Part shown: positions 9,105-63,832 of the stretch, piece after piece
Numbering within the stretch: the first letter of the stretch is position 1
How the letters are laid out: every line of letters starts with the position of its first letter
NCBI GenBank assembly: GCA_964247055.1
Contig: OZ176052.1
Coordinates: 12,524,001 to 12,588,000 of the forward strand
From: Paragordius varius
Lineage: Eukaryota; Animalia; Nematomorpha
Length of the DNA: 64,000 bases
Direction of reading: 5' to 3'
The notes under the pieces: generated by a model
Databases searched by the model: none
Told to the model about the DNA's origin: nothing
Seen by the model: the letters and a program-made list of their open reading frames with translations, nothing else
Program-made: the position numbers and the translations under genes

Positions 9105-9365
9105 CCCTAGAACGATCTTAAAAAATTATAATTGATATGGCTAATTCTAAAAAATGCAGTCACGTAAAATATCATCTCTAACATTTCGCTGCCAAAATTT
9201 CTGATTTGGGATAAATAGCTAAACTATAAATTATGTTTTTAAAATTTAATTAATATTCTATTAATTATAATCTGGTTGCGAAAATAGATTATAATTCAAC
9301 TATTAACTTGGATTTAATAGCTAAAGAACTGTAAAAAGTAAAATCTTTTTATTTGTTTAAAAGTA

Positions 9366-10371
9366 CTAGCGTAAATCTCGTGCTGCTACGTAGCCCAAGG
9401 ATGTCCTTCGGACTTCTGGGGTGGGGGCATATTTGATTTTATAAGCAATTTTATTATGCGGCACGAAGTTCTAAAATGATTCACATAGTCTCATAAGTTA
9501 TCTGAAATTTGGCTTCAAAGGCATGCTGTATCGATATGATGGCGCAGTTGTAGGCGGGTGCGACCCACTACTTAGAGGCCAACATAAAAATGAGTTAGAT
9601 AAAAAATTTTGCCTTTATACCTGAAATCATCATTCATTCCTAATAGTTTATATATGAATGGCTTAAAACTAAATAATAGTTCAATGATAGCGCATTTTTC
9701 AGGGGGTAAAGGGCCTATATAACGGCTAATTTGAAAAATCCGCTCGACTTATATTTTTGACTTTTTATGGGTAATACTTTAAGCAGATATTGAACTCATA
9801 TGGCCTGATAGGTTTTCTGAAATTTAGCCCCAAAAGCACGCTATTTCGAGATGACGGCTAGTTTTTCGTGGCTAGCTCCTTACCTAGCAGCTATCATCAA
9901 TGAAACGCTTGACTAAAATTTTTGCCTTTTAACAGGGAATACGTGGAATCTTTAGTGATATTTTACGGTCTCATGGGCGAATAATAGAATCAAAAAATTA
10001 TTTTTGTGGACTTTGTTTTTTTTGAAAAAAATGGCATTTTACGGGGGGAGCGGGTAAAAAGAGGGCTCAAATTAAAAAAGCGAGCCGACATGTTCGGCGC
10101 AATTGAAAATAAATAAACAAAAATCATATTTGAAATTGAATGGTCCAACACGTTCTCCGGAAAATTATCTCAACACGATTTTTGTGGACTTCTGTTTACA
10201 AAAATAACCCGTTTTTTACACGGGGTGGGTCCGAACTTGGGGCCTTTAAAAAAAGGGCGAGGGGCATTCATTAATGATTATATTTTTTCGATATTTGAAT
10301 TTGAATGGGTCTACCGGTTTTCCGGAAACAGATCACAAAGCTAGCATTTTCCATTTTTATTAATACATAGA
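9366..10371 (-). mobile_element. Non-autonomous Helitron
   Basis: On the - strand it starts TCTATGTATTAATAAAAATG, ends with a GC hairpin followed by CTAG, and sits between A and T. A homologous copy lies at 56691-57769. Confidence 0.85.
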
Positions 10372-10559
10372 TGATGTTCGTATTTTAGCAATAACATTAG
10401 TGATAGTAATTCTTTATACAAAACTTTACAATGTACCAGGATTCATAAGTCTTAGCTGTTATTCAAAAATCATGTATTTGCGGCACGCACTGCTTTTCCC
10501 ATTCAATTAACAGAAAAAGGCTAGACAGTCATACTATGCTGGTATAAACATATGATGAA

Positions 10560-11360
10560 CATGCTCCATCAATTAAAACATGAGAATCGTTTTAAATTAT
10601 AAAAAGTGATTTTAATGTGAAAGGGGGTGAACGCTCTCGTAATCTACAAACTGTTTAGACGATAAAGGTTAAAGGTTATTAGATGTTTGAATAATTCAAA
10701 CTCAACGGGGATTGGCAAAATCACATGTATCTAAATAACAATCAGGAGGACAGGGGGAAAGACCAATAACCTCGGTAAATGGTTCCCTATGTCGAATCGA
10801 AAATTGCAAAGGGATTTTAAAATTCTGTTTCAACGTTACAAGAAGATTATTTTTTCATCAAATTGGGACGGGTGATTAGAATTGCATATATTTTGTAATT
10901 CTTAAGCGGACAACGTTTTCACCTTGCCAAGCCGATCCATCAACACCGAGGCTTTATTCCTTCTGCAATGAAACCATGCCTTGAGTACCAGAGTAGTATT
11001 GCGTATTATAAACTTTTGAAGCCCGGTGTAGCCGTTTAACACCCCAACAAATAATTAATTTGAACTATGCATCAATCGAAAAAAGACCGGAATAGGCCAG
11101 AAAACACGGCAAAATTCAAAACCAGTCAACGACAGCTTTAAATCACTTCAATGGGAACTTCTTTCGCATCCACTCTCCTAACCTGAACCTATTGCATTAA
11201 TATCGCACGTGCTTGCAAACCAAGACTTTAATAATTTCCAATTTGAAAAATGGATTGAAAGATGATTTGCCACATAGGCAATCAGTTTTTCTTACAGCAT
11301 TTATATTTTACCTGAGAGATGGGCGAAATATGTAGAAGCTGATGTCCAATATTTTGCATA
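10560..11360 (+). pseudogene. Degenerate mariner transposase
   Basis: Frameshifted fragments YYKLLKPG, LQWELLSHP and LPERWAKYVEADVQYF resemble mariner C-terminal motifs (YYELLKPG, WEVLPHPPYSPD, LPERWEKCV). Boundaries approximate. Confidence 0.8.
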
Positions 11361-11511
11361 AATATTTTGGTTTTTCTTCAATATTATCTATTCTTTTCCA
11401 AACATGTACGAGATATGACTTAATCTTAGCATGTATAATTTTACAAAAATGTATAAGAAAAAAGTAACCTTTAATGTACAAATGTGCTTAATTATTAATT
11501 TTAATATATAC

Positions 11512-13933
11512 TTTGAAGCAGGCTTCTGTTTAAATTATTGTTAACAAACATATTACAAAATCTCGTATTGTTGCAACAATACCATCTGGCACGGAAAGAA
11601 TTTATTAAAGGATATCTATTTAGTCCTGCGGCACATTTTGTGGGAATATCCTCAAGTGCCATGCAGCTAAATAAAAATAACAAAATTTTAAAGCATTGGT
11701 ACAGCTGACAAAATAAACCCTAAAATGGGAGAAGATTTGAAATTTAACAATAGATTTTTGTATTCACTTTTAAACACTTTATGGTCTAGAATCATTTATA
11801 ATTTAAATATCTAAAAAACATTTTTATTGTTGGGCCAAATTTAAGCTTTTAGCCTTTTAGCGCATACAAATTTTTTTTTAAAAATTTAAATTGGTACAAT
11901 AATTCTCATCTCAAACTTTTCTAACGTCATTTTTTCGTCAATACTTTTTTAAATCAATACAATAGAAATATTGTATATTATGGCTAAATAATATAAATAA
12001 TTATTGACAAGCATTCGAATAACAATTCACCAGCAAATTTTTGATATTTATTTATTTTAATATCAGATGTTAACTTTTATCATGTTTCGGAGCTATCCGA
12101 ATTCGGGAACTGTAAAAAATCTAAATTTTTTATCCATACAGGAGTATTGGGTTTTTGATAATTTAATTTTAACCAAAACAACTTTCTTAACAGTAGTTGG
12201 TTTACTACTTCAAGCCCTGGGATAGAAAAATTCCCCAAAATGACATTGCATACAAATAGATGAAAATGATAGAAGTGTTAAGCATAAATAGTGTATTTTT
12301 ATTTTTCTTATAACTATTTTAATAAATATAATTTTAAGATAGCTGACTAAATACCCATAATCAATCTCTTGGGACTCATCGTTAAATTTGACATAACATA
12401 CACCGGTCGTTATGCAATACTTATATTTTTTACACTGACTGCAGTAACAACGGAATAAATCTATCAATAAAATAATATTATTTAAATAAAAAGCAGCAAG
12501 GCTTATAATTATTTCGCTGATGAATATTAAAAGTCCATATTCGAAGCCTCAAATTTTAGAAAAATTAAAATTGGAAGGAGTGGAGTTAGAAGCCACAAAA
12601 TAGGGACAATACCTATAAGAAATATTTTAATGGTTAAGCCATATACTAAGAACTGATATGGAGAATATGGATAGAAAAGGAATGATTAAATATAAATCAA
12701 ATGTTTTAATAAGACATTATTACGATGAAAAAATTAATGTTGCTAAAGATAGGCCTTTGGTAATTCTGGGATATATATGGGTAATATAAAATACCTTTTA
12801 AAGCAGGAGTTTAAATAAAAAAATTTATAGTTTTTTAAATAATTTTTGATTTAATTAAAAAATATGTATCTATAAAATAATTTTACAATCACAAGATAAA
12901 TACAATATTAAAGGCAACAATCGTATATATATATATATATATATATCATACTCAATCGATTTTCATTTTCGGCATCGATACCTATAAAAATTATACAATT
13001 ATAGTTGTCATGGAAATTTTTTTTAGATCAAAATATATAATTATATTTAATATGAAACATCCTCACCCAATTTAAAAGTTTCTCGATTACCATTGCACCA
13101 ATTGAGTTGACAACATCGCCTGCGCGACACAAAGGCCAACGACGAATTCGCATAAACATTTGGTGGCACAACGCAAAACTCGTATTTTTCAAATTTATTC
13201 AGACATCTGATTTTAAAATAGGATTTTTAATCGCATAAAATGAAATTATTAGCAATTTGCAGGATTAGGCTGCTTACTATCCAGATCCTACATACCTTTA
13301 ATAAAATACTAACTATTTTGACATTTAAGCCATTATTTGATCCCATCAGTTACTCTTTAATCATCTTAAATATCTCTTCTTTAAATAGATAAAATTTTAT
13401 ATGACACGTTTTCACAAATATATTTTGCAAGATTTTGGCTTAAAAAACATTTGTGGAAAGTTTAAAAATAATCACTTTAAACAGATTAAGCAATAAAAAA
13501 TATTGAAGATTGTATTTGTCAAATTAGAAAAGAAATTACAACTCACATAATATAGATTTGATTAAATTACCCGAAAGTTATACTGTTATTGTAACGATTT
13601 TCAACAAAGCAAGAACCGTCTGTGGCACAATATCTGGATCGAAACCTACAATTATTGCAATGGCACCAAAGGGTTTCTAAACATTTGAAAAAGTATACAA
13701 GGTTAAATAAAAAAAAATACAAAAAAAATATTTATTTTTGTAAAATTACAATTAAAATAACCTTTATTTGTGTGATAATCATATTTAGGCCATTATAACA
13801 TATTAAAAATTATACTTTTTGATATAAAAATAAATGCCACAATTTTAAATTAGGTTTGATCTGTACCAGTTTCGAATGCATTCCTTACAGTAACTATGAT
13901 GTTTAGAAAAATACCCAGTAAACCTGTGAACAT
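11512..13933 (-). CDS. Signal-peptide protein with two tandem 10-Cys TGF-beta/activin/BMP type I receptor-like ectodomains (3' end unresolved)
   Basis: Exons 13933-13867 (MFTGLLGIFLNIIVTVRNAFET), 13676-13571, 13206-13091, 12460-12355, 11666-11512; all GT-AG and in phase. Domain A: LWCHCNNCRFRSRYCATDGSCF...GCL...FC...CCQLNWCN. Domain B: FRCYCSQCKKYKYCITTGVCY...GCM...KC...CCNNTRFCN. Confidence 0.88.
12530..12790 (+). mobile_element. Decayed RTE-like LINE 3' fragment (intronic)
   Basis: Stop-interrupted frame containing WLSHILRTD, similar to the RTE WLGHVLRMD motif. Confidence 0.5.
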
Positions 13934-14485
13934 ATGTAAAACCCTTTTTTTAAATATGTAATTATATTGCAAGCTTAATTTAATCAAAAAGTGTTTTTCT
14001 TTCTATGTCCTTATTTAATCAAATGTCAATATTTATATTCGATAACACTACTAGAGCAAAATGATTGGTTATTTTATAGAGTTAAGTTCCACTACATATT
14101 ACATATTTGCATTTGCAATATAAATTGACTGGAATGAATCACAAAGCAGTCAAACCGATTCTTAATAAACGGTTACCTGATCTTAGTTAAAAAACTAATT
14201 TTAGAATACCCCGATAATGTTGTGTTTTTAAGTTTTTTCATTTATGTTGTAAAATTAATTTCATGTATAATAATAAACCTCGACTAATGAAAGATATTTT
14301 GAGTTTTAATTTCTATTATAACAATTCGTATAAGGTTAAAAACATTTTATTATTTGGAGTATTTCACCATCATATTTTTTTATTTCTAATTCTTAAACTA
14401 TTAACTTGTCGCCTGAATAATTAATACCACTTCTTGTCTCAACACATTCCCATTTTATGACCGTTAAATACAAATAGATTTATAT

Positions 14486-15759
14486 CAGGGGTGGCCAAAG
14501 GGTCGACCGCGGTTTACTTTGTGACCGCCTGAAAGTTTTTATAAAAGTGCAAAAAATATTTTTTCACAGATAGATCTAAACAAAATAATAATTTATTTTT
14601 CTTAATATATTTTTATTTGGTATTTGAAAAATATACTTGTTAACAAAAATTTTAAGTTAATTAAGTATTTTATTTAAATGTTTGCGATTTCCTTAGAAAA
14701 TAGTTTAAAATTAGCAAAAAAACAATAAACTTATATTTTAGTATGGTTGAAAATTCAAGCTAGAAAAATGCTAAAGTACATCGTTATATAGAAATGAATG
14801 GGAAAGATTACATTTTATAATTGAATAATAAATGTACTTGTTATGCATTTCCTCCGTTGCCTAAAAAGGCAAATGTCCAAAGATATTTTACTCCTTTCAC
14901 ATGAGATCAAAAATACAATTCAGATATTCTCAAATCAAAGATCAATGTTGAAAAAACAAAATGCTTAGAAACACTGCATTGAATAATACAATAATAAAAA
15001 ATCCATAATTGCAACTTACAAACTATCAGAAATCCTATTAAAAAACAACGTATCTATTCAGGACGTTTTGGAAAAAAGCTCTAATAAAGCTTCCGAAGTG
15101 CTATTAGAAAATTATGAAGACAAGAGTTTCAGATGTCAAATTAGAAAAATGCTTAAAATACTGTTGTTTAATAGATTTGCAATGTACAATTTTTCTGAGA
15201 TATCGCATTAAAAGGTCAAGAAGCGATTTTAGATCTTTCATTTGTGGATATAAATATTCTCTAAAATAGATAGATATATTCGTAGTAAAATTTGTTTTTA
15301 TCTTCTATAAATGCAGCACGACTATGTCAACCCTGATTCCTTTAAATAAACTCAAACTGAGGTGCGACATTGTTTTCAATTTGATGGAATATACAATGTC
15401 GAAGCGTATGTATATTGTTTAAATGGTATGCATAATCCATAGTAAATTATAAAGATCACAGTTAATTATCCATAAATTGAATAAGGTCAATGTTTTAATA
15501 ATTGTACAGATTGCAACTAGAGCTCTTGTGAATCAACCTTAATTATGTATTATGATATAACTGAGATAATATAAAAAAACTACTCAAAACAATTATTATA
15601 AAATAATTTGTGCTAGTCACCCCAATCGGAAAATAGAGATATATATATTTGGATCATTTGTATGAAGTGATGAATAAATCTACTTCATATTCATACGTGC
15701 TCGTTTGAAATTTTCTCCCCAAAAAATAGCCCGCAGGAAAAAAAGGTTGGCCACCCCTG
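14486..15759. mobile_element. hAT (Charlie/Buster-type) deletion derivative
   Basis: TIR CAGGGGTGGCCAA / TTGGCCACCCCTG; TSD ATTTATAT / CTCTATAT (6 of 8 match); internal transposase-like remnants. Confidence 0.85.
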
Positions 15760-16987
15760 CTCTATATTATGTATATGAGCAATCGTGATTTAAATATCAA
15801 AAGCTATTGTGATACCCCTTTTTGACAACCAATATTTATTCAAAAAAGATAAAAGCCTTTTACTGCTATTCTGAACCTAATGTTTTTAATTATTTATTGT
15901 TTTAAGTGCAATAATATAAAATTATATTTCATGCAAATTAATGATAAAATCTAATGGAATACAGACATTTTCATTTCTTTCAATAAATGCCCGAATAATC
16001 AACATTAAATAATTGCTATTAAAACCTGCTACTAATAGGGATAATTGCGACCCATAAAATAGTAGAATAATTTTTGCCATTTTTATGCAAATTATTAAAA
16101 TATATTATTGTGGCTATAAAATGCAAGATTTGTTATATTTCGTCTGACGAGGTTAAATAAAAGAGTAGGTTAATGAATCGTAGCTAAAATTATATAACTG
16201 TAAATAAAAATTGCAAGTATTGTGCCTTTATCAATAAAAATATACGAGGTCGATAAGAATAAATAATTTATTAATAGCCCTGCCAATAATAATCCTTCTT
16301 GCCTCAATATGTTTTAAAGGTCATCTTCAAATCCACAAAAGCTTGAAAAGTTTGATATGAAAAAATAAATTACTAAGAATGCTGATAGACTCATATTTGA
16401 TTGATGTAAAATAATTAATTTGCTATTAAAATTTAAAAATAATTTTTCATAAGGTCAATTAAATGCATCGATTCAATATCATTTAAGCCGTTTACTAATT
16501 GAGATGAGTTTTGTAAAATAGGTTTAATTTAATGATAATATTTGCGATGTTAACACTTAATTATATTTTAAGATTGTTGCTAATTTCTGATATCGCTTAT
16601 GTCGCCTTCGGTACGTAGCGGTTTGCGATCTAAACCGATAGCAGAGCGCCGATCAAAATATATTTTTCGACAAAAAACACATAAAAAATAATAATATCTG
16701 CATTAGTATAAAAAATATTTTCGCCATTTATTTATAATAATTAAACTTTGTTGGGCATATATTTGGCCATTTCCAGTTATTTAGTGATAAAATAAATTTC
16801 CGATTGTAGGCACAATATGGCCATGAAGGACTGATTCGTAAGCCGTCAGACAGGTTATTATCATTGATAAAAGGATATTCTACTAACAAATGGAAATATA
16901 TTTAATTAGATCTATAACTGAGAATATAACTTTTTGCGATATTTATTATTTTTCTGTTTTTTGTAATATTTCTTTTGTAACTCATAT

Positions 16988-17060: not shown

Positions 17061-18046
17061 TAAGTAAGCCCCTTAAATAACAAACTCAGGTACAGTGATA
17101 AAAAATATAAAATGTTTTGCATATCTAAACCAAAATTTGAAAAAACACATATTTTTTAGCAGATAATGTTAAATATAGGGTGCTGCAAAATTGCAGATCT
17201 CTTTTTAATTTTTTTCCAAATTCTTGAGTTTTAAAAACATTATTAGAGCTGTAGTAATCCAAATTTTCGGACTAATTACATAATAAATATTTTTAAAATA
17301 TAAAATGCTTGGTTATTGTTAATGAAAATCTAAAATACAAAATTAAAAATGAATTCCAAATAAAAACAGAGTTTTTCTGGTTTCAATTGTGCTTCTCTGC
17401 AGGTATTATTAAATTACAATAACCGGTACGTTCCAAATAACATATTATAATTTTTTTAGGCTTAGATCGAGGTTAAAAAAATTGATTGGGGCAGCGTTTT
17501 CCTTTAATTTTTGGATATTCTAATTATTGCGACAACAAACCGCAAAATTTATTGCCTATGAAAAATAACTGTTGCAAAATCTTAATATTTATAAAGAAAA
17601 TATCTTATTATCTGGGATATTGGACGAAAGAGGACAATATGCATGTTAGCCTTTTTTATTATTAAAAATGAAATGCAAATGTAAAAACATCACCGTTTTC
17701 AATTTATTATCGCATTTTTTTTAATACACATTATATTGATTTATTTTTTGTTTCAATTCCATTTCTCCCCATTAATTTTTTTGGGTTGAAGCAGTTTTAT
17801 CCTTTGGAATATTGCATTTTTTTTGTAATAAGTCACGCCAATATGTATTGTTTATAAAAAAACAAAAGGTAATAAACTGATATATATAATAAAGCTTATA
17901 ATTATATTTGGCAAAAATACCTTCTATATCTGTGGGATAAAACACTCATTTTATTTTATATAGGAAAGAGTAACAAAGTGTTAACTATAAATCAGTATTT
18001 TAATTTTAAAATGCGTCATCAGTGTATGTTGTATGAGGATATCCTA

Positions 18047-20529
18047 ATGTCAGGTGTTTTTCACGATAAAAACAAAATACAGACGGTGGTCCAAGATCGG
18101 TTAAATGAAGCCTTTAAAAGTCAATACATTAAATTAAATGTTGGAGGACATTTATTTTATACAACTATCAACACACTTACCAAATATGATAATATGCTTC
18201 GGGCGATGTTTAGTGGACGAATCAATATTTTAGCCGATGAAGAAGGTAAAATATTAATTTATATTTACAGGATGGATTTTATTGGATAGATCTGGAAAAC
18301 ATTTCGATAAAATTTTAAATTTTTTGCGAGATGCCCATGTTTGTTTGCCAAAGAATGAACAGGAGTTGAATGAGATTCTTGTCGAAGCCAAATATTATTT
18401 AATTCTAGAATTGGTTGATTTATGTACAAAAGAAATAAATGCCCTCGAAGAAGAGTTAGAACCAATTTGTCGAATTCCTCTAATAACATCCAAAAAGGAA
18501 GAACAGATACTCTTGTCAACGACCACAAAACCGGTCGTTAAACTTTTAATTAACCGACATAACAATAAATATTCGTATACAAAGTATGTTTTCATAAATT
18601 TTACATTTTGGCATTCAAAAAAATTATTTTTTGTTAGTTTAGAGTTAAAAGTTCTATGTTATCATTGGTGAGTTTTGTAGATAAATGTGCGATTCCGAAA
18701 TAGCCTTGGCTAATAAGTTTTTAAATTGTTAATAAGGAAAAAAATTAAAGTATGTTCAACATTAGGATATAACACATTCAGTCCTTCAATTTGGATTGGG
18801 GTTACCCCAGGCCAGATTAAAATAAAATATTTCACGAAATAGGGAATAAATTGAATGCAAAATTTTGCACTAATATAACATTGATGCACTGGTATTGAAA
18901 AGAGTTTTTATCAAACAAAATTGATTATAATAATCTTATTGATAAACTTAGCCAACATGACATGTGTGTATTAGCTAAATATAAATTTATTGCAAAATAA
19001 ACCACTTTTTATGTTTTTATATATGTTAGATGTGATTTTAATTAAAAATTAACCTTAACTTTAGCGTTGGAATAATAAAACGATATTTTGCAAAAAAAAT
19101 AAATAAAAACGGCGGCAGAGTAGTTTGATATGGTCATCTAATAACCTTAGTTATTAGGATAGAAGCATAAATTTAAATTGCAATCGTCCTTTTCAGTAAT
19201 TTTTTAGAATATTAATTCAAATATGGTGGGGCTTCCCTAGTTACCCCAATTTGAATCAAAGAGTTATGCAAGTATACAAATAAATTATACCCGCTTATAC
19301 AAATTTGATTTTCACTAACAATTTAGATGTACTTATATATGCAATGTTCAAATATAATAACCTATTTAAGGTACCGTTTCACTAAATCAATTCTTATCCA
19401 TTAGATTTCTAATTAAATGCTGACTTATACAATGTTAGGATTTTTCAATATAGTCCATATTTGTTTCTTTTTTTTGGACTTTGAATCCTAACTTGATTAT
19501 TTAGATAATATAGCCATACAATATAAAAAATTAATAAAATCCAATAAGATTGTTAGTGAAACATTTATCTTTTATCTGAGAGGATTAAATTTGCGTTTCG
19601 TATTAACGCTTGTTGGATTATTAATACACACCTTGTCGAACTAAACTTTATAAATTTTTATACTATTGTAATCAATTTTATCTTCCTTTTATACTATTTA
19701 GCATGTCAGATGACAATCTTCTAAAAAACATTGAATTGTTTGATCGACTTTCCTTGCGATTCAGTCATCGCATTCTGTTTATAAAAGACATTCTTGGAAA
19801 TAATGAAATATGTTGTTGGTTCTTTTTTGGCGATAATCGCAAGATTGCAGAAGTGTGTTGCACATCTATCGTATATACCACGGAAAAGAAACAAACAAAA
19901 GTACATCCCTAATTTTAAACCAAACATACATCAGTCAATTTTTTATTGTGCGCGGACTTTTTTTTGTAAAATGGATTTTTGTAATATTTTTAAGCCATGG
20001 TTTCTAACATGAAAAAAAAACGTTTTTTTATTTACTAAATATATTTAAACAAAACGCTTTTTTATATATATTAATAATGAAATTAATTTATAAAATATGT
20101 GTATAATTTGGTTTTAATAAGGTATATATTTTTTTAGCGTTAAATGGCGTTTTCATTTGAATTCTCTTCTAAAGTTTTTTTTTCTTTATGCCGATTTTTT
20201 TAAATTTTGTGCGGTCCCGTGCTTTTCACCGAAAATGTTTAATTCAAACCATATATATAATTATATGAAAATCTATTAATAAGGTTGATTTCCCAGAAGC
20301 CCGAATATATGAAGAAACTTTAAATACATTGCTTTATGAATCCAACAAAAATAAGGAGAATGTTACAGAACAAATGCGGCCCCTTTTTGTCGACACACAA
20401 AAACTTTCTTTGATTTCGAATGTTGGAAATAGTATTACGACCAACTATACAAGTGATGATGAAGATTCTACCAATATTCCTTCAACTAAAGATTTGGAGC
20501 GTGTCAGACGCCTCAGATTTCATGATTAG
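18047..20529 (+). CDS. KCTD10: BTB/POZ CUL3 adaptor, KCTD10/KCTD13/TNFAIP1 family
   Basis: Exons 18047-18245, 18271-18583, 19702-19900, 20284-20529. Motifs [74 protein letters not shown]. The upstream in-frame ATG at 18011 is an alternative start. Confidence 0.95.
18756..19266 (-). mobile_element. piggyBac-like TTAA MITE, degenerate reverse copy in KCTD10 intron 2
   Basis: Both ends match the reverse complement of the 56091-56654 element (GGATATAACACATTC... and CCCCAATTTGAATCAAAG). Confidence 0.75.
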
Positions 20530-53459: not shown

Positions 53460-54639
53460 CCTTAAAATGCAATCTTCGTTTGAAAATTTCATATGTAATC
53501 AATTGTTTACAACGAAAATTAAATCCTTAAAAATATGATATCTATTTATTTACTATACTTGACCAACCATCGGGATTGGAAATCGGAATCATTAGTTTTA
53601 TTGATCCGAGGACCAAAAGATATTAAATAACAATTGTTGACCGTTTTTATCATTTGAGCTGTTTCAAATGTTTTCGAAAAATATTCTGTTAGCATCTTTC
53701 GATTATTTATATTTCGCTGCAACTTTAAACATTTTGTTATATATTTTATTTATATAGTTGAGAGAAATGCCTTCGGAAATTGTTTAATTACTATGTTGTT
53801 TTCTAGACAAATGGAACCGGAGTTAAAAATTGGCAAAAAATATTTGAACTTGGAACAAAAGTGTTTCGTCAAAAACCGATTTTCACTAACAGTTCATTAT
53901 ATTTTCTTTTTGATATTTTAGGGGTGGTTTTTTAACCCAAAGTTTAAAGCATTAAACAAACTACTCTTTTAAAAGTTTAGTTAATTATCAAACCCTTTTC
54001 TGCTGTTTAAATTCTCACAGTTTCTATTGCTAAAATTTAGATAGCTCAAAAACATAATAGTAGCAAACAGCTGATATTAAAATAACAAATATCAAAAACT
54101 TGTCAGTAATTTTTAATCTAAAGCCTACTTAAGTTAATATATATTTTTCAACCATAATATACATTTATTGGCCTGTTGTATTCAGGATTTGAAAAAATAT
54201 ATTGTTAAAAACGGCGAAAAATTTGAGATGAGGATTTTTCCACATTACATTTTTGAAAACTTTACTTTCTTAAACCCTAAAGAAGGATACTTAAATTTAG
54301 CCGAAAATTTATGCTCCCGGGGTATAATACAACCCCAAAAGATTAATGCTAACTTTCCTCAAATTCAATAGCTAATCATCTATAACTGATACAGCGATGT
54401 ATAATTTAAATCAGTAACATTTAAACCGCGGCCCACGGCCACGCGGCAATTAAGTGCTTTTTATGGCCCTAATTATTTATTAAATTTTCTGTTGCACATA
54501 TTTTGAATATAAACATCTGCATATGTGTCAAACTAATCACTGCGTCCGAAATCGGGTATTAGATATAACTGATGATATATATACTGATAACTGTATCAAG
54601 ATTATCATGGTTTCCATAAAATATCATTAAAATATATTT

Positions 54640-56654: not shown

Positions 56655-56690
56655 TTTGGCTTCTTGGTGAAATCCGAATTTATATTGATA

Positions 56691-57769
56691 CTAGAGTAAA
56701 TCTCGTGCTGCTACGCAGCCCGAGGAAACCTGGACAATAATATGATCCACATATGTGGATTATTTCGAAACATTATTGAATAGATATAATTTTATAGGAA
56801 TTTTTTTAACGGATCATTCATACTAATATATTGTTTAATTGGGGGAAAAATAGATTTAAAAAATTATTTTTGTGGCAGTCTCATACCTTGGGCAAAAAAA
56901 TACAATCAAAAAATTATTTTTGTGGACTTTGTTTTTTTTGAAAAAAATGGTATTTTACGGGGGTAGCGGGTAAAAAGAGGGCATAAATTAAAAAAGTGAG
57001 TCGACTATGTTCGGCGCGATCAAAAATAAGTAAACAAAATCCATATTTTAGATTTAATGGTCCAACACGTTCTCCGGAAAATTGACTTAACGCATTTTTC
57101 ACACGGGGTAGGCCCGAACTGGGGACCTAATTCCAAAAAAGGGCGAAGCTATTGTCGGGACATTTATAATGATTATAATTTTTTGATATTTGGATTTGAT
57201 TGGGTCCACAGGTTCCCGAAACAGGTCACATTACATGAGGAATCAGTTTTTAGCGGGTAGCTCCCTAGCCAGCAGCTATCATCAAAGAAACGCTTGACTA
57301 AATTTTTACCTTTTAACAGGGAATACGAAAAATCCTTATTCAATTTTTACAGTCTCATACCTTGGGCAAAAAATACAATCAAAAAATTATTTTTGTGGAC
57401 TCTGTTTTTGTAAATGGCATTTTACGGGGGGAGCGGGTAAAAAGAGGGCCTAAATCAAAAAAGCGAGACGACCATGTTCGGCGCAATCGAAAATAAGTAA
57501 ACAAAAATCATATTTAAAAAAAATGGTCCAACACGTTCTCCAGAAAATTGTCTCAAAGACACGATTTTTATAAACTTCTGTTTTCAAAAAAAAACCCGTT
57601 TTTCACACGGGGTGGGCCCGAACTCGGGGCCTATTTCAAAAAAGGGCGAGGCTATTGTCAGGCATTTATTAATGATTATATTTTTTAGGCATTTGGATTT
57701 GAATGGGTCTACCGGTTTTCCGGTACCAAATCACAAATCCAGCATTTTCCATTTTTATAAATATATAGA
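56691..57769 (-). mobile_element. Non-autonomous Helitron with internal ~475-bp tandem duplication
   Basis: - strand: A|TCTATATATTTATAAAAATG ... CTCGGGCTGCGTAGCAGCACGAG hairpin ... CTAG|T. Duplicated block CAGTCTCATACCTTGGGCAAAA at ~56876 and ~57350. Confidence 0.88.
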
Positions 57770-58295
57770 TTCATAGAAATCTCTATGCATTAGGTTAATA
57801 AATTTTATTGATTAGCGGTTTGACAAAAGAATTAGAAAAAATGTTGACAACTGCGGCCTAATGCCATAAAATTCTATTTTTAGGCTTGACCCAACGAGTT
57901 AAAAAACTAGATATTGATATATATATAAAAATCTTTTAATAAATATAAATTTTATGTTTACAATCTAAGTCCTCAACTCCCAATTGTTTTGAAAATTATT
58001 TGTATTATTTAACCTTTAAATTTGATTGAAAATTATTTGGTATCACTAAAAACCAAATATGAAAATAAGTGAATCTTTTGATTGTGGTTGAAATTCATAT
58101 TCATATTTTCTTGTAAATTTTATTTTTATAGTAATTATTCAATATATTACTTTTAATAATATATAGCACATGTAATTTATTTAAGCGCTTTTAACAAACA
58201 TACAGCTCTTTCAAAATAATTTATACTTTTTGCATGCGTATTTACGCACATATTTTTCATATGGAGAACGGGTGAGTTTTTGCGGGTTATTCAAA

Positions 58296-62413: not shown

Positions 62414-63832
62414 CTATTTATCGAAAAAACGTTTAAACACTTTGTTGACCATAATTCTGTAATAAGGGTTGAACATGTAAGTAAAGTAAAATGTGCACGT
62501 GATGTATACGTATTCAAGGAATGAAAAAAAGAGAAACCATTTCGACATACTGGATCGTACCATCCATTGAGATATAAAATCCCAAATCATTTGAATAATA
62601 GATAAAGGTAATATGAGTAAAATGAATTCTACAGTCAATATAATCAATGTACGGATTTGTTCTTTGTTGATCAATTCTTTCCGACGATACAGTACATTTT
62701 TTGTAAGATCAATTCTACTGTGAGTAATCTGTGGTTGATTTAAAACTGAGATTTGGGACGTAAATTTTTTACTAAGTTGTGTGTCATTTGGTAGCCTTTC
62801 ATTAACCGGAAACAAGGTATGTGCTGATAAAGTTCTTCCACCCTTATTTTGATGTTTGGGGACCACACTTTGGTTTTTACGAACTACGGTGTCATACGTA
62901 ATTAAATAGGAATTTAATATTTTACGGCTGTTTTTAATTAATATACATTTGCATATTATGATACCAAGGAATGGCAAGATACGTAAAAATACTTCCCTAC
63001 TAATTTCATACGTTGTATACAACTTTTGTAATATAGGGCGCGTCTTTGGTATAACTAGAGGGCTTAATATCCAGAGGTATACACCTTCGCTTGTAATTTC
63101 TGGAGGAGGAATAATGGAATGATGATTGTTTAAACTTTCTTTCTTAAGGTGCTCATCAAAACATATCAAGTATCTTTTATGATCTAACCAAAAATATATG
63201 GGTAAGGACCAAAGGAAAACACTGATTGACAAAATCCAAATAGCTAATCGTACGCGTTTCTTAGTGACTAGATAAACGTATCGATATGGGTATTGTATTG
63301 CAAGGAATTGATTTAAAAAGACCAATATATACATCATGAATCCTATATTCACTAACGCTTTGTTCATGATATAATGAATGTGAGCCAAATAAAAGACCCA
63401 ACCCTTTCGTCCCCAAATGGGATTGTAATTGGCCTTTCCCCACATCCTCAAAACTGGTGCAGGGATCATTAGCAAAGTGTTTACCAAATTCACGGCATAA
63501 AAAAGTCTTAAAAGGTGTTGATTAACATTTAACTTTGCATGTGCGGTACCATATTTCTTTTTGTGGTGAACATGTTCAGAGGTTTTGTCAGTTTTACTAA
63601 TAATATTGGATGTTGAGCTTTTTTTATGTTTATTGATAATTCTGTTTGATGTTAAAGCAATTCCAATCGAATTCCCTACCAAACCCAGGGCCAAAAGGAA
63701 AACGAAAGCGTAACTATTGACTAACATAAAATGATCATCTAAATAGAGATCGATGTAACTAAAAGTTGTACAATTTTGTGTTTTGGGTAAAACTGTAGCG
63801 GGTAACGTTTTGAAGATTTTTAATTGAATCAT
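62414..63832 (-). CDS. Intronless orphan class A (rhodopsin-like) GPCR, 472 aa
   Basis: Seven hydrophobic segments. TM1 LGLVGNSIG; post-TM3 FLAIQYPYRY; TM4 IWILSISVFLWSLP; TM5 FLRILPF; long basic ICL3. Resembles invertebrate peptide (FMRFamide/Srw-type) receptors. Confidence 0.85.
   Translation of the reverse strand: MIQLKIFKTLPATVLPKTQNCTTFSYIDLYLDDHFMLVNSYAFVFLLALGLVGNSIGIALTSNRIINKHKKSSTSNIISKTDKTSEHVHHKKKYGTAHAKLNVNQHLLRLFYAVNLVNTLLMIPAPVLRMWGKANYNPIWGRKGWVFYLAHIHYIMNKALVNIGFMMYILVFLNQFLAIQYPYRYVYLVTKKRVRLAIWILSISVFLWSLPIYFWLDHKRYLICFDEHLKKESLNNHHSIIPPPEITSEGVYLWILSPLVIPKTRPILQKLYTTYEISREVFLRILPFLGIIICKCILIKNSRKILNSYLITYDTVVRKNQSVVPKHQNKGGRTLSAHTLFPVNERLPNDTQLSKKFTSQISVLNQPQITHSRIDLTKNVLYRRKELINKEQIRTLIILTVEFILLILPLSIIQMIWDFISQWMVRSSMSKWFLFFSFLEYVYITCTFYFTYMFNPYYRIMVNKVFKRFFDK

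Follow-up and report, generated by a model that had tools for sequence, protein, structure and literature searches.

Analysis of a 64,000-nucleotide stretch of the Paragordius varius genome (contig OZ176052.1 of GenBank assembly GCA_964247055.1, positions 12,524,001 to 12,588,000; hereafter the window, to which all coordinates refer) revealed a compact five-exon gene on the minus strand between positions 13933 and 11501, which is very probably real and which would encode a protein with two tandem domains of the Ly6/uPAR (LU) type. The interpretation that is favoured here, and that is held tentatively, is that the product is a secreted two-domain LU protein with a type I receptor flavour that serves as a soluble binder, with a decoy or modulator of the TGF-beta family being the likeliest role. 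A previous interpretation of the same DNA, made from the letters alone (the sequence-only reading), had proposed two tandem ectodomains of TGF-beta type I receptors without a detectable kinase.

Gene structure and coding potential

The gene model was derived by reading the minus strand from 13940 to 11490, with the exon borders checked by script, and comprises 585 nt in total, equivalent to 194 codons plus a stop, with GT-AG borders throughout and a consistent frame. Exon 1 (13933-13867, 67 nt) begins with an ATG at 13933 and encodes a 22-residue hydrophobic leader, a candidate signal peptide, that precedes a phase-1 donor (G/GTACAG, the slash marking the splice border). The N-terminal half of the first module is encoded by exon 2 (13676-13571, 106 nt), which contributes five cysteines in the arrangement CxCxxC-x6-C-xTDGx-CFV, whereas exon 3 (13206-13067, 140 nt) encodes the C-terminal half, C-x9-C-x19-CC-x4-CN, followed by a 9-residue linker and a phase-1 donor (G/GTGAGG). 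The second module is organised in the same manner, with exon 4 (12460-12355, 106 nt) encoding the five cysteines of the N-terminal half (CxCxxC-x5-C-xTTGx-CYV) and exon 5 (11666-11501, 166 nt) encoding the C-terminal half (C-x9-C-x18-CC-x5-CN), a 16-residue tail and the TAA stop codon at 11503-11501. The four introns, which lie within 11667-13866, are 190, 364, 606 and 688 nt in length, all with GT..AG ends and a GC content of 0.17-0.24, and interrupt the frame in phases 1-2-1-2 such that the codons split at the junctions specify E, G, D and G. In both modules the internal junction is located between Cys5 and Cys6 and restores a Gly immediately before Cys6, the G-C junction codon at exon 3 being supplied by the acceptor tcag/A. 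Each module accordingly reads as ten cysteines with the spacing C-x-C-x2-C-x5/6-C-x5-C ... G/C-x9-C-x18/19-CC-x4/5-CN.

The duplicated two-exon module, its 1-2-1 phases and the identical length of 106 nt for both first exons, all of which featured in the sequence-only reading, were reproduced by the script-checked borders, and the exon reading likewise recovered the ten cysteines claimed for each module. The signal peptide that had been proposed is plausible as far as the hydrophobic 22-residue leader is concerned, but exon 1 has a weak donor and it is hard to tell where the leader would be cleaved. The gene had also been taken to end at 11512; the open reading frame (ORF) in fact runs on to the stop at 11503-11501, and what lies close to the earlier limit, in the last codons of exon 5, is a possible and unused phase-1 donor read from the sequence (A/GTATAT, border 11511/11510, within 11504-11511), use of which would end the exon at 11511. 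The position of this donor relative to the CN motif is approximately the same as that of the exon 3 donor, and inspection of the minus-strand ORFs downstream revealed no exon that could be assigned to it. Three other splicing possibilities were considered and rejected: removal of a 28-nt GT..AG stretch (GTAAGG...ACAG, 13888-13861, minus strand) as a micro-intron of exon 1 results in a frame that stops after 17 codons without a phase-compatible donor, use of a stronger phase-0 donor (ACT/GTAAGG) either breaks the frame or loses the cysteine motif, and use of the acceptor cgag/TTTTGC for exon 3 breaks the frame with loss of the CC..CN motif.

Several properties of these exons set them apart from the surrounding DNA. 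The window is AT-rich (GC content of 0.24-0.34 in 2-kb bins), and in its background, taken over all frames, 7.1% of codons are stops and 2.6% specify Cys. For the four coding stretches, which total 168 codons, the chance of all being open is approximately 4e-6, and the 20 cysteines observed, compared with 4.3 expected, have an associated probability of approximately 2e-8. Additionally, when all six frames of the 64 kb were searched, the N-half motif and the CC..CN motif were found only at these four exons, on one strand and in the order N, C, N, C. The uniqueness of the motifs, the enrichment in cysteine and the open frames together indicate that the arrangement is more than a product of chance. 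The GC content also shifts at the predicted borders, from 0.17-0.24 in the introns to 0.34-0.40 in the exons, with exon 2, for example, having a value of 0.39 against 0.17-0.24 in the adjoining introns. Numerous intronic sites distinguish another individual of the species, represented by sequencing runs X4 and X5, from the window; among the differences listed, those in exon 5 (positions 11543 and 11633) both fall at third codon positions and are synonymous (GTT>GTC and TGT>TGC), which is a hint of constraint.

Similarity to type I receptors

Pfam, PDB and homology searches were conducted exon by exon, with pieces of 34-54 amino acids that each correspond to half a domain, and the PDB search covered 177,635 distinct sequences. 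The six best matches to exon 2 were five TGF-beta receptor type-1 (TbetaRI) ectodomain chains (E=0.18-0.52) and ACVR1B (E=0.74), and the five best matches to exon 4 were the same five TbetaRI chains (E=0.04-0.05), with both alignments placed at the very start of the receptor ectodomain. Combining exons 2 and 4 in a two-sequence profile of 35 positions improved the match to TbetaRI to E=0.0023, the next match being unrelated and having E>1. An off-frame Cys-rich ORF of equal size from the same DNA, employed as a control, gave no PDB match, and no three-finger toxin, CD59, uPAR or other Ly6 chain appeared among the PDB matches, despite the database holding many of them.

Comparison with the TbetaRI/ALK5 and ACVR1B/ALK4 ectodomains (PDB 2pjy_C, 3kfd_I and 7oly_K) showed that the ten-cysteine three-finger pattern is common to the receptors and to the modules. 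The resemblance of the N-terminal halves extends to the tight C-x-C-x2-C cluster, to the C-x-T-D/T-G-x-C-F/Y-V motif that follows and to the location just after the leader, and in module 1 it amounts to 11 of 24 aligned residues being identical to TbetaRI. Conversely, the C-terminal halves agree with the receptors by pattern alone, without detectable similarity, and 18-19 residues separate Cys7 from Cys8, a longer loop than in the receptors. The gene differs further in encoding two ectodomains in tandem in place of one, and in having no transmembrane (TM) segment, GS box or kinase that could be found. The GC-x9-C spacing of the modules presumably resembles that of BMP type I receptors.

The features that are specific to receptors have to be separated from those that are general to the LU superfamily. 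According to a review of LU proteins (PMC6600238), LU genes typically possess a signal exon, after which each domain is encoded by a pair of exons that generally have phase-1 introns on either side, and every domain added in multi-LU proteins retains that structure; the ectodomains of type I receptors themselves fit the plesiotypic ten-cysteine LU signature, in which the last cysteine is followed by Asn. The gene described here has the same organisation, with a signal exon, two exons per domain and phase-1 flanks, and both of its modules carry the ten plesiotypic cysteines and the Asn after Cys10. The features that the sequence-only reading had treated as special (a duplicated module of two exons with its phases, ten cysteines per module and a CCx4-5CN ending) therefore represent the archetype of the superfamily and are not specific to type I receptors. 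The tandem arrangement is not special in itself either: uPAR, C4.4A and Haldisin are tandem LU proteins, as are zebrafish proteins with two LU domains that both retain ten cysteines and Drosophila proteins with 2-44 LU domains (PMC6600238), such that flies, fish and mammals all provide precedents. The known multi-LU proteins share with this gene the signal exon, the two exons per domain split in loop 2 and the symmetric phase-1 introns, the last of which mean that a module can be duplicated, and the zebrafish two-LU proteins share with it the full set of cysteines in both tandem domains.

Two differences from these proteins were evident. Multi-LU proteins are mostly anchored by glycosylphosphatidylinositol (GPI), the signal for which, where present, sits in the last exon (PMC6600238), whereas here that exon closes with a stop preceded by a hydrophilic tail; and the usual LU N-terminal spacing is C-x2-C, whereas the modules described here have the receptor-type C-x-C-x2-C. 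Only the CxCxxC...TDGxCF half is thus specific to type I receptors, with the other features of the modules generic to LU domains, and what is specific to this gene is the occurrence of a receptor-type N-terminal half within a putatively secreted tandem protein.

Absence of a kinase and a membrane anchor

Scanning of all six frames of the entire 64 kb for HRDxK, DFG/DLG, G-loop, DxWS and SGSG/GSGS motifs returned none of them; the matches to kinase motifs were limited to one of the APE type and one of the VAVK type, both of them isolated chance occurrences on the plus strand and outside this gene. The 16-residue tail encoded by exon 5 is hydrophilic and exon 5 consequently offers no GPI signal or TM segment. 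Further along the minus strand, the ORFs between 11500 and 4600 resemble AT-rich noise, the largest of them lack a Pfam domain and no convincing TM exon was apparent. Downstream hydrophobic ORFs, such as those at 9117-8971 and 8879-8652, were rejected as candidate TM exons, being AT-rich, without a Pfam domain and as polymorphic as introns. The expectation that neither a GS box nor a kinase motif would be encountered before a citrate synthase gene was thus confirmed, as was the identity of that gene, which is the next on the same strand: Pfam Citrate_synt matches an exon at 4020-3736 (minus strand), and an N-terminal exon at 4178-4032 (minus strand) was recognised by eye. The location of these exons at 4178-3736 places the start of the next minus-strand gene approximately 7 kb downstream. 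With high confidence, therefore, the protein is considered to be kinase-less and unanchored, and it could not signal by itself because it has no TM segment, GS box or kinase.

A precedent in this respect is BAMBI, which is characterised in two articles (PMC13719153, PMC6600238) as a negative regulator of the pathway that has a type I-like ectodomain without kinase activity. The likeness of the ectodomain is found here too. BAMBI differs in having a single ectodomain, a transmembrane segment and a short intracellular domain, whereas the present gene encodes two ectodomains and no TM segment was found.

Proposed function

In the proposed model, a two-exon LU module flanked by phase-1 introns would have been duplicated to give a tandem gene, and the predicted product of approximately 194 amino acids would be secreted as a leader followed by two tandem three-finger LU domains, the N-terminal half of each having the flavour of a TGF-beta type I receptor. 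Outside the cell this product would act as a soluble binding protein. The kinship of the N-terminal halves makes TGF-beta-family ligands or their receptor complexes the most natural class of target, and the likeliest targets would be TGF-beta, BMP or activin-family ligands or the receptor complexes that these engage, sequestered or modulated by the protein as a decoy, possibly via both domains. That the protein is secreted, that a single transcript carries both modules, that a ligand is bound and that the gene has a part in parasitism are all inferred from sequence; a decoy role for growth factors appears plausible on this basis, and binding to a TGF-beta-family ligand should be regarded as possible and somewhat doubtful.

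A number of observations weigh against this interpretation. The C-terminal halves, which would form much of the ligand interface, appear unrecognisable: exon 3, exon 5 and the profile built from them gave no PDB match, an ESM Atlas feature search with exons 5 and 3 gave no usable match and a word-indexed protein search with exon 5 gave no candidate. Pfam returned no match at E<=10 on any single exon, each being a half-domain that is too short for the Activin_recp, UPAR_LY6 and Toxin_TOLIP profiles. A full HMMER scan of 1.84 billion representative proteins with the N-half profile yielded no homologue and just four spurious matches (bacterial NHL-type 'TDGSCWVAD' repeats and other repeats), although the scan is uninformative about relatives because a profile of 35 positions cannot reach significance for true receptors. 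Both the ten-cysteine signature and the organisation of the exons are common to LU domains in general, and proteins with such domains have numerous targets that are unrelated to one another. A simple trap model is weakened by the poor ligand binding of TbetaRI/ALK4-class type I ectodomains when these are on their own and no type II receptor is present. The weak donor of exon 1 counts against the model also, as does the transcript evidence: the five runs that hold the locus are all DNA, as is apparent from their contigs running through the introns, the small runs presumed to be RNA hold no words from the locus, and no junction read was found. Of the original proposal of tandem type I receptor ectodomains, the part that concerns the N-terminal halves survives, these being closest to TbetaRI and ACVR1B across the PDB, whereas between the C-terminal halves and receptors no similarity was detectable.

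Provided that the gene is expressed and that its product binds ligand, the protein would be a naturally occurring soluble trap with two domains, both constructed from type I receptor ectodomains, an architecture of which no description was found in the literature searched. The known natural antagonists of the TGF-beta pathway use other folds, and BAMBI is membrane-bound. On the same conditions, a set of related proteins of this kind in a parasite that inhabits insects would clearly merit consideration as a means of interfering with growth-factor signalling in the host. The gene would also, if the interpretation is correct, demonstrate a mobile LU module, flanked by phase-1 introns, that lets a receptor ectodomain escape its kinase. 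A much bolder extension of the model, which is considered very improbable, is that type I ectodomains gave rise, in hairworms only, to an expanded family of secreted decoys, of which this gene would be a two-domain member, and that the parasite releases these into its insect host to sequester host activin or BMP-type ligands and thereby shift host development, immunity or behaviour. Were that the case, release of decoys would be a strategy opposite to that of the known helminth TGF-beta mimics.

Alternative explanations

The most serious competitor to a TGF-beta-family decoy is an ordinary secreted Ly6/uPAR protein with two LU domains, the partner of which is unrelated to TGF-beta (an ion-channel modulator, a junction or adhesion factor, or a complement-type regulator, for example), and in which the likeness of the N-terminal halves reflects shared LU ancestry. 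This is a genuine possibility that is nonetheless judged rather unlikely. It accounts for the archetypal signal exon, paired domain exons and phase-1 flanks, retained with each added domain (PMC6600238), for the plesiotypic ten-cysteine pattern with its CN ending, for the lack of similarity between the C-terminal halves and any receptor and for the failure to detect Pfam Activin_recp on any exon. LU-only proteins are also reported from hairworm genomes: according to a 2026 survey, the single nematomorph genome that has been annotated encodes 14 LU-containing proteins, some of them LU-only and others receptor kinases (PMC13719153). What it does not account for is the C-x-C-x2-C cluster and the xTDGxCF/V motif, which fit type I receptors and not the usual C-x2-C start of LU domains, nor the fact that only TbetaRI and ACVR1B are retrieved from the whole of the PDB. 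Should the protein prove to be of this ordinary Ly6 type, the present work would amount to routine annotation of an unannotated gene.

The second alternative concerns the use made of the two modules. A search of intron 3 for a hydrophobic leader that starts with ATG and ends at a phase-1 donor gave none, and across 13860-16000 the leader at 13933 is the sole one to combine an ATG, a hydrophobic core and such a donor; module 2 is therefore dependent upon exon 1, having no leader of its own in intron 3, and the notion of two separate single-domain genes was rejected. When all five exons are joined, 13 residues separate the CN of domain 1 from the first Cys of domain 2, a spacing that is typical of tandem LU proteins, and it is probable that both modules are present in one product. 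Alternative use of the modules, either by splicing of exon 1 to exon 4 or by read-through that ends after exon 3, would instead generate single-domain secreted isoforms with different specificities. Both modules start in phase 1, such that the joining of exon 1 to exon 4 stays in frame, and failure to splice at the exon 3 donor introduces a stop after five more codons, so that the structure of the gene, together with the lack of a separate leader for module 2, is compatible with this scheme. There is a precedent in Drosophila Baboon, isoforms of which arise from an alternative fourth exon (PMC12124520), the duplicated and frame-compatible exons encoding variant ligand-binding sequence of a TbetaRI/activin-type ectodomain, as they would in this scheme. 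In Baboon, however, single alternative exons are spliced into a common TM and kinase body, whereas in this case whole two-exon domains are involved and the window contains no common downstream body; the Baboon-type design needs a downstream exon that is common to the modules, and none is present. Together with the tandem-type spacing noted above, this renders alternative use of the modules unlikely.

A decaying or never-expressed duplicate of a family member, that is, a pseudogene, would be consistent with the detection of the locus in DNA runs only, the runs presumed to be RNA lacking its words, with the weak donor of exon 1 and with the lack of a homologue in the protein databases searched. 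Set against this, all four coding stretches are open in DNA where 7% of codons are stops, all 20 cysteines and all 8 splice sites are intact, the GC contrast of the exons has been kept and both variants seen in exon 5 are synonymous, such that decay of the gene is considered very improbable.

Least probable of all is that the exons belong to a genuine type I receptor or to a BAMBI-like membrane pseudoreceptor with TM and kinase exons that lie far downstream or were missed, for despite the possible A/GTATAT donor just before the exon 5 stop, the hydrophobic ORFs downstream and the multi-kb, transposon-filled introns of this genome, no frame of the 64 kb contains a kinase or GS motif, the minus strand is taken up by citrate synthase from about 4500 down, the hydrophobic ORFs are AT-rich, domain-less and as polymorphic as introns, and known type I receptors have one ectodomain each.

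Surroundings of the gene

Between the gene and citrate synthase, at 9360-10372, lies a dispersed repeat that resembles a transposon and has a very high copy number, with a copy at 56689-57770. The summed depth of words from this repeat in contigs is 10^5-10^6, compared with a few hundred alongside, and many of the contigs have internal deletions; the one ORF scanned within it (9993-10169) contains no Pfam domain. Just past the stop codon, a unique stretch at 10450-11350 has an exon-like GC content of 0.38-0.48, with no long ORF on either strand and no match in Pfam or Rfam, and could represent a 3' untranslated region, a regulatory region or a non-coding RNA. No match was obtained when the DNA around the gene was scanned with Rfam and for tRNAs. 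Repetitive sequence is present within the gene also, in that intron 3 contains a (TA)n run and intron 4 holds a dispersed repeat of approximately 230 bp (11875-12103), an inverted copy of which, with 71% identity, is located at 54034-54259; depth is raised at 12000-12199.

The upstream neighbour is a BTB/KCTD-type gene on the opposite (plus) strand at 17978-20529, the first ORF of which is matched by Pfam BTB_2. Towards the far end of the window, a 472-residue single-exon ORF with many hydrophobic segments (62414-63832, minus strand) has a weak match to the rhodopsin family of seven-transmembrane proteins (E=8.5e-4, below Pfam's cutoff) and is, on sequence grounds, a putative divergent gene of the G protein-coupled receptor type. 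The public gene index contains no record of this ORF. Exact look-up of a neighbouring single-exon ORF in an assemblies index gave no record, and the genome there seems to be unannotated.

Runs X4 and X5 derive from a second sample that is labelled as the same species; between 8600 and 14599, several percent of their intronic positions depart from the window and small indels are numerous, indicating high heterozygosity or population divergence. Run X3 carries a different organism label, and seven of the eight pieces listed for it are identical to the window, the remaining one having three differences.

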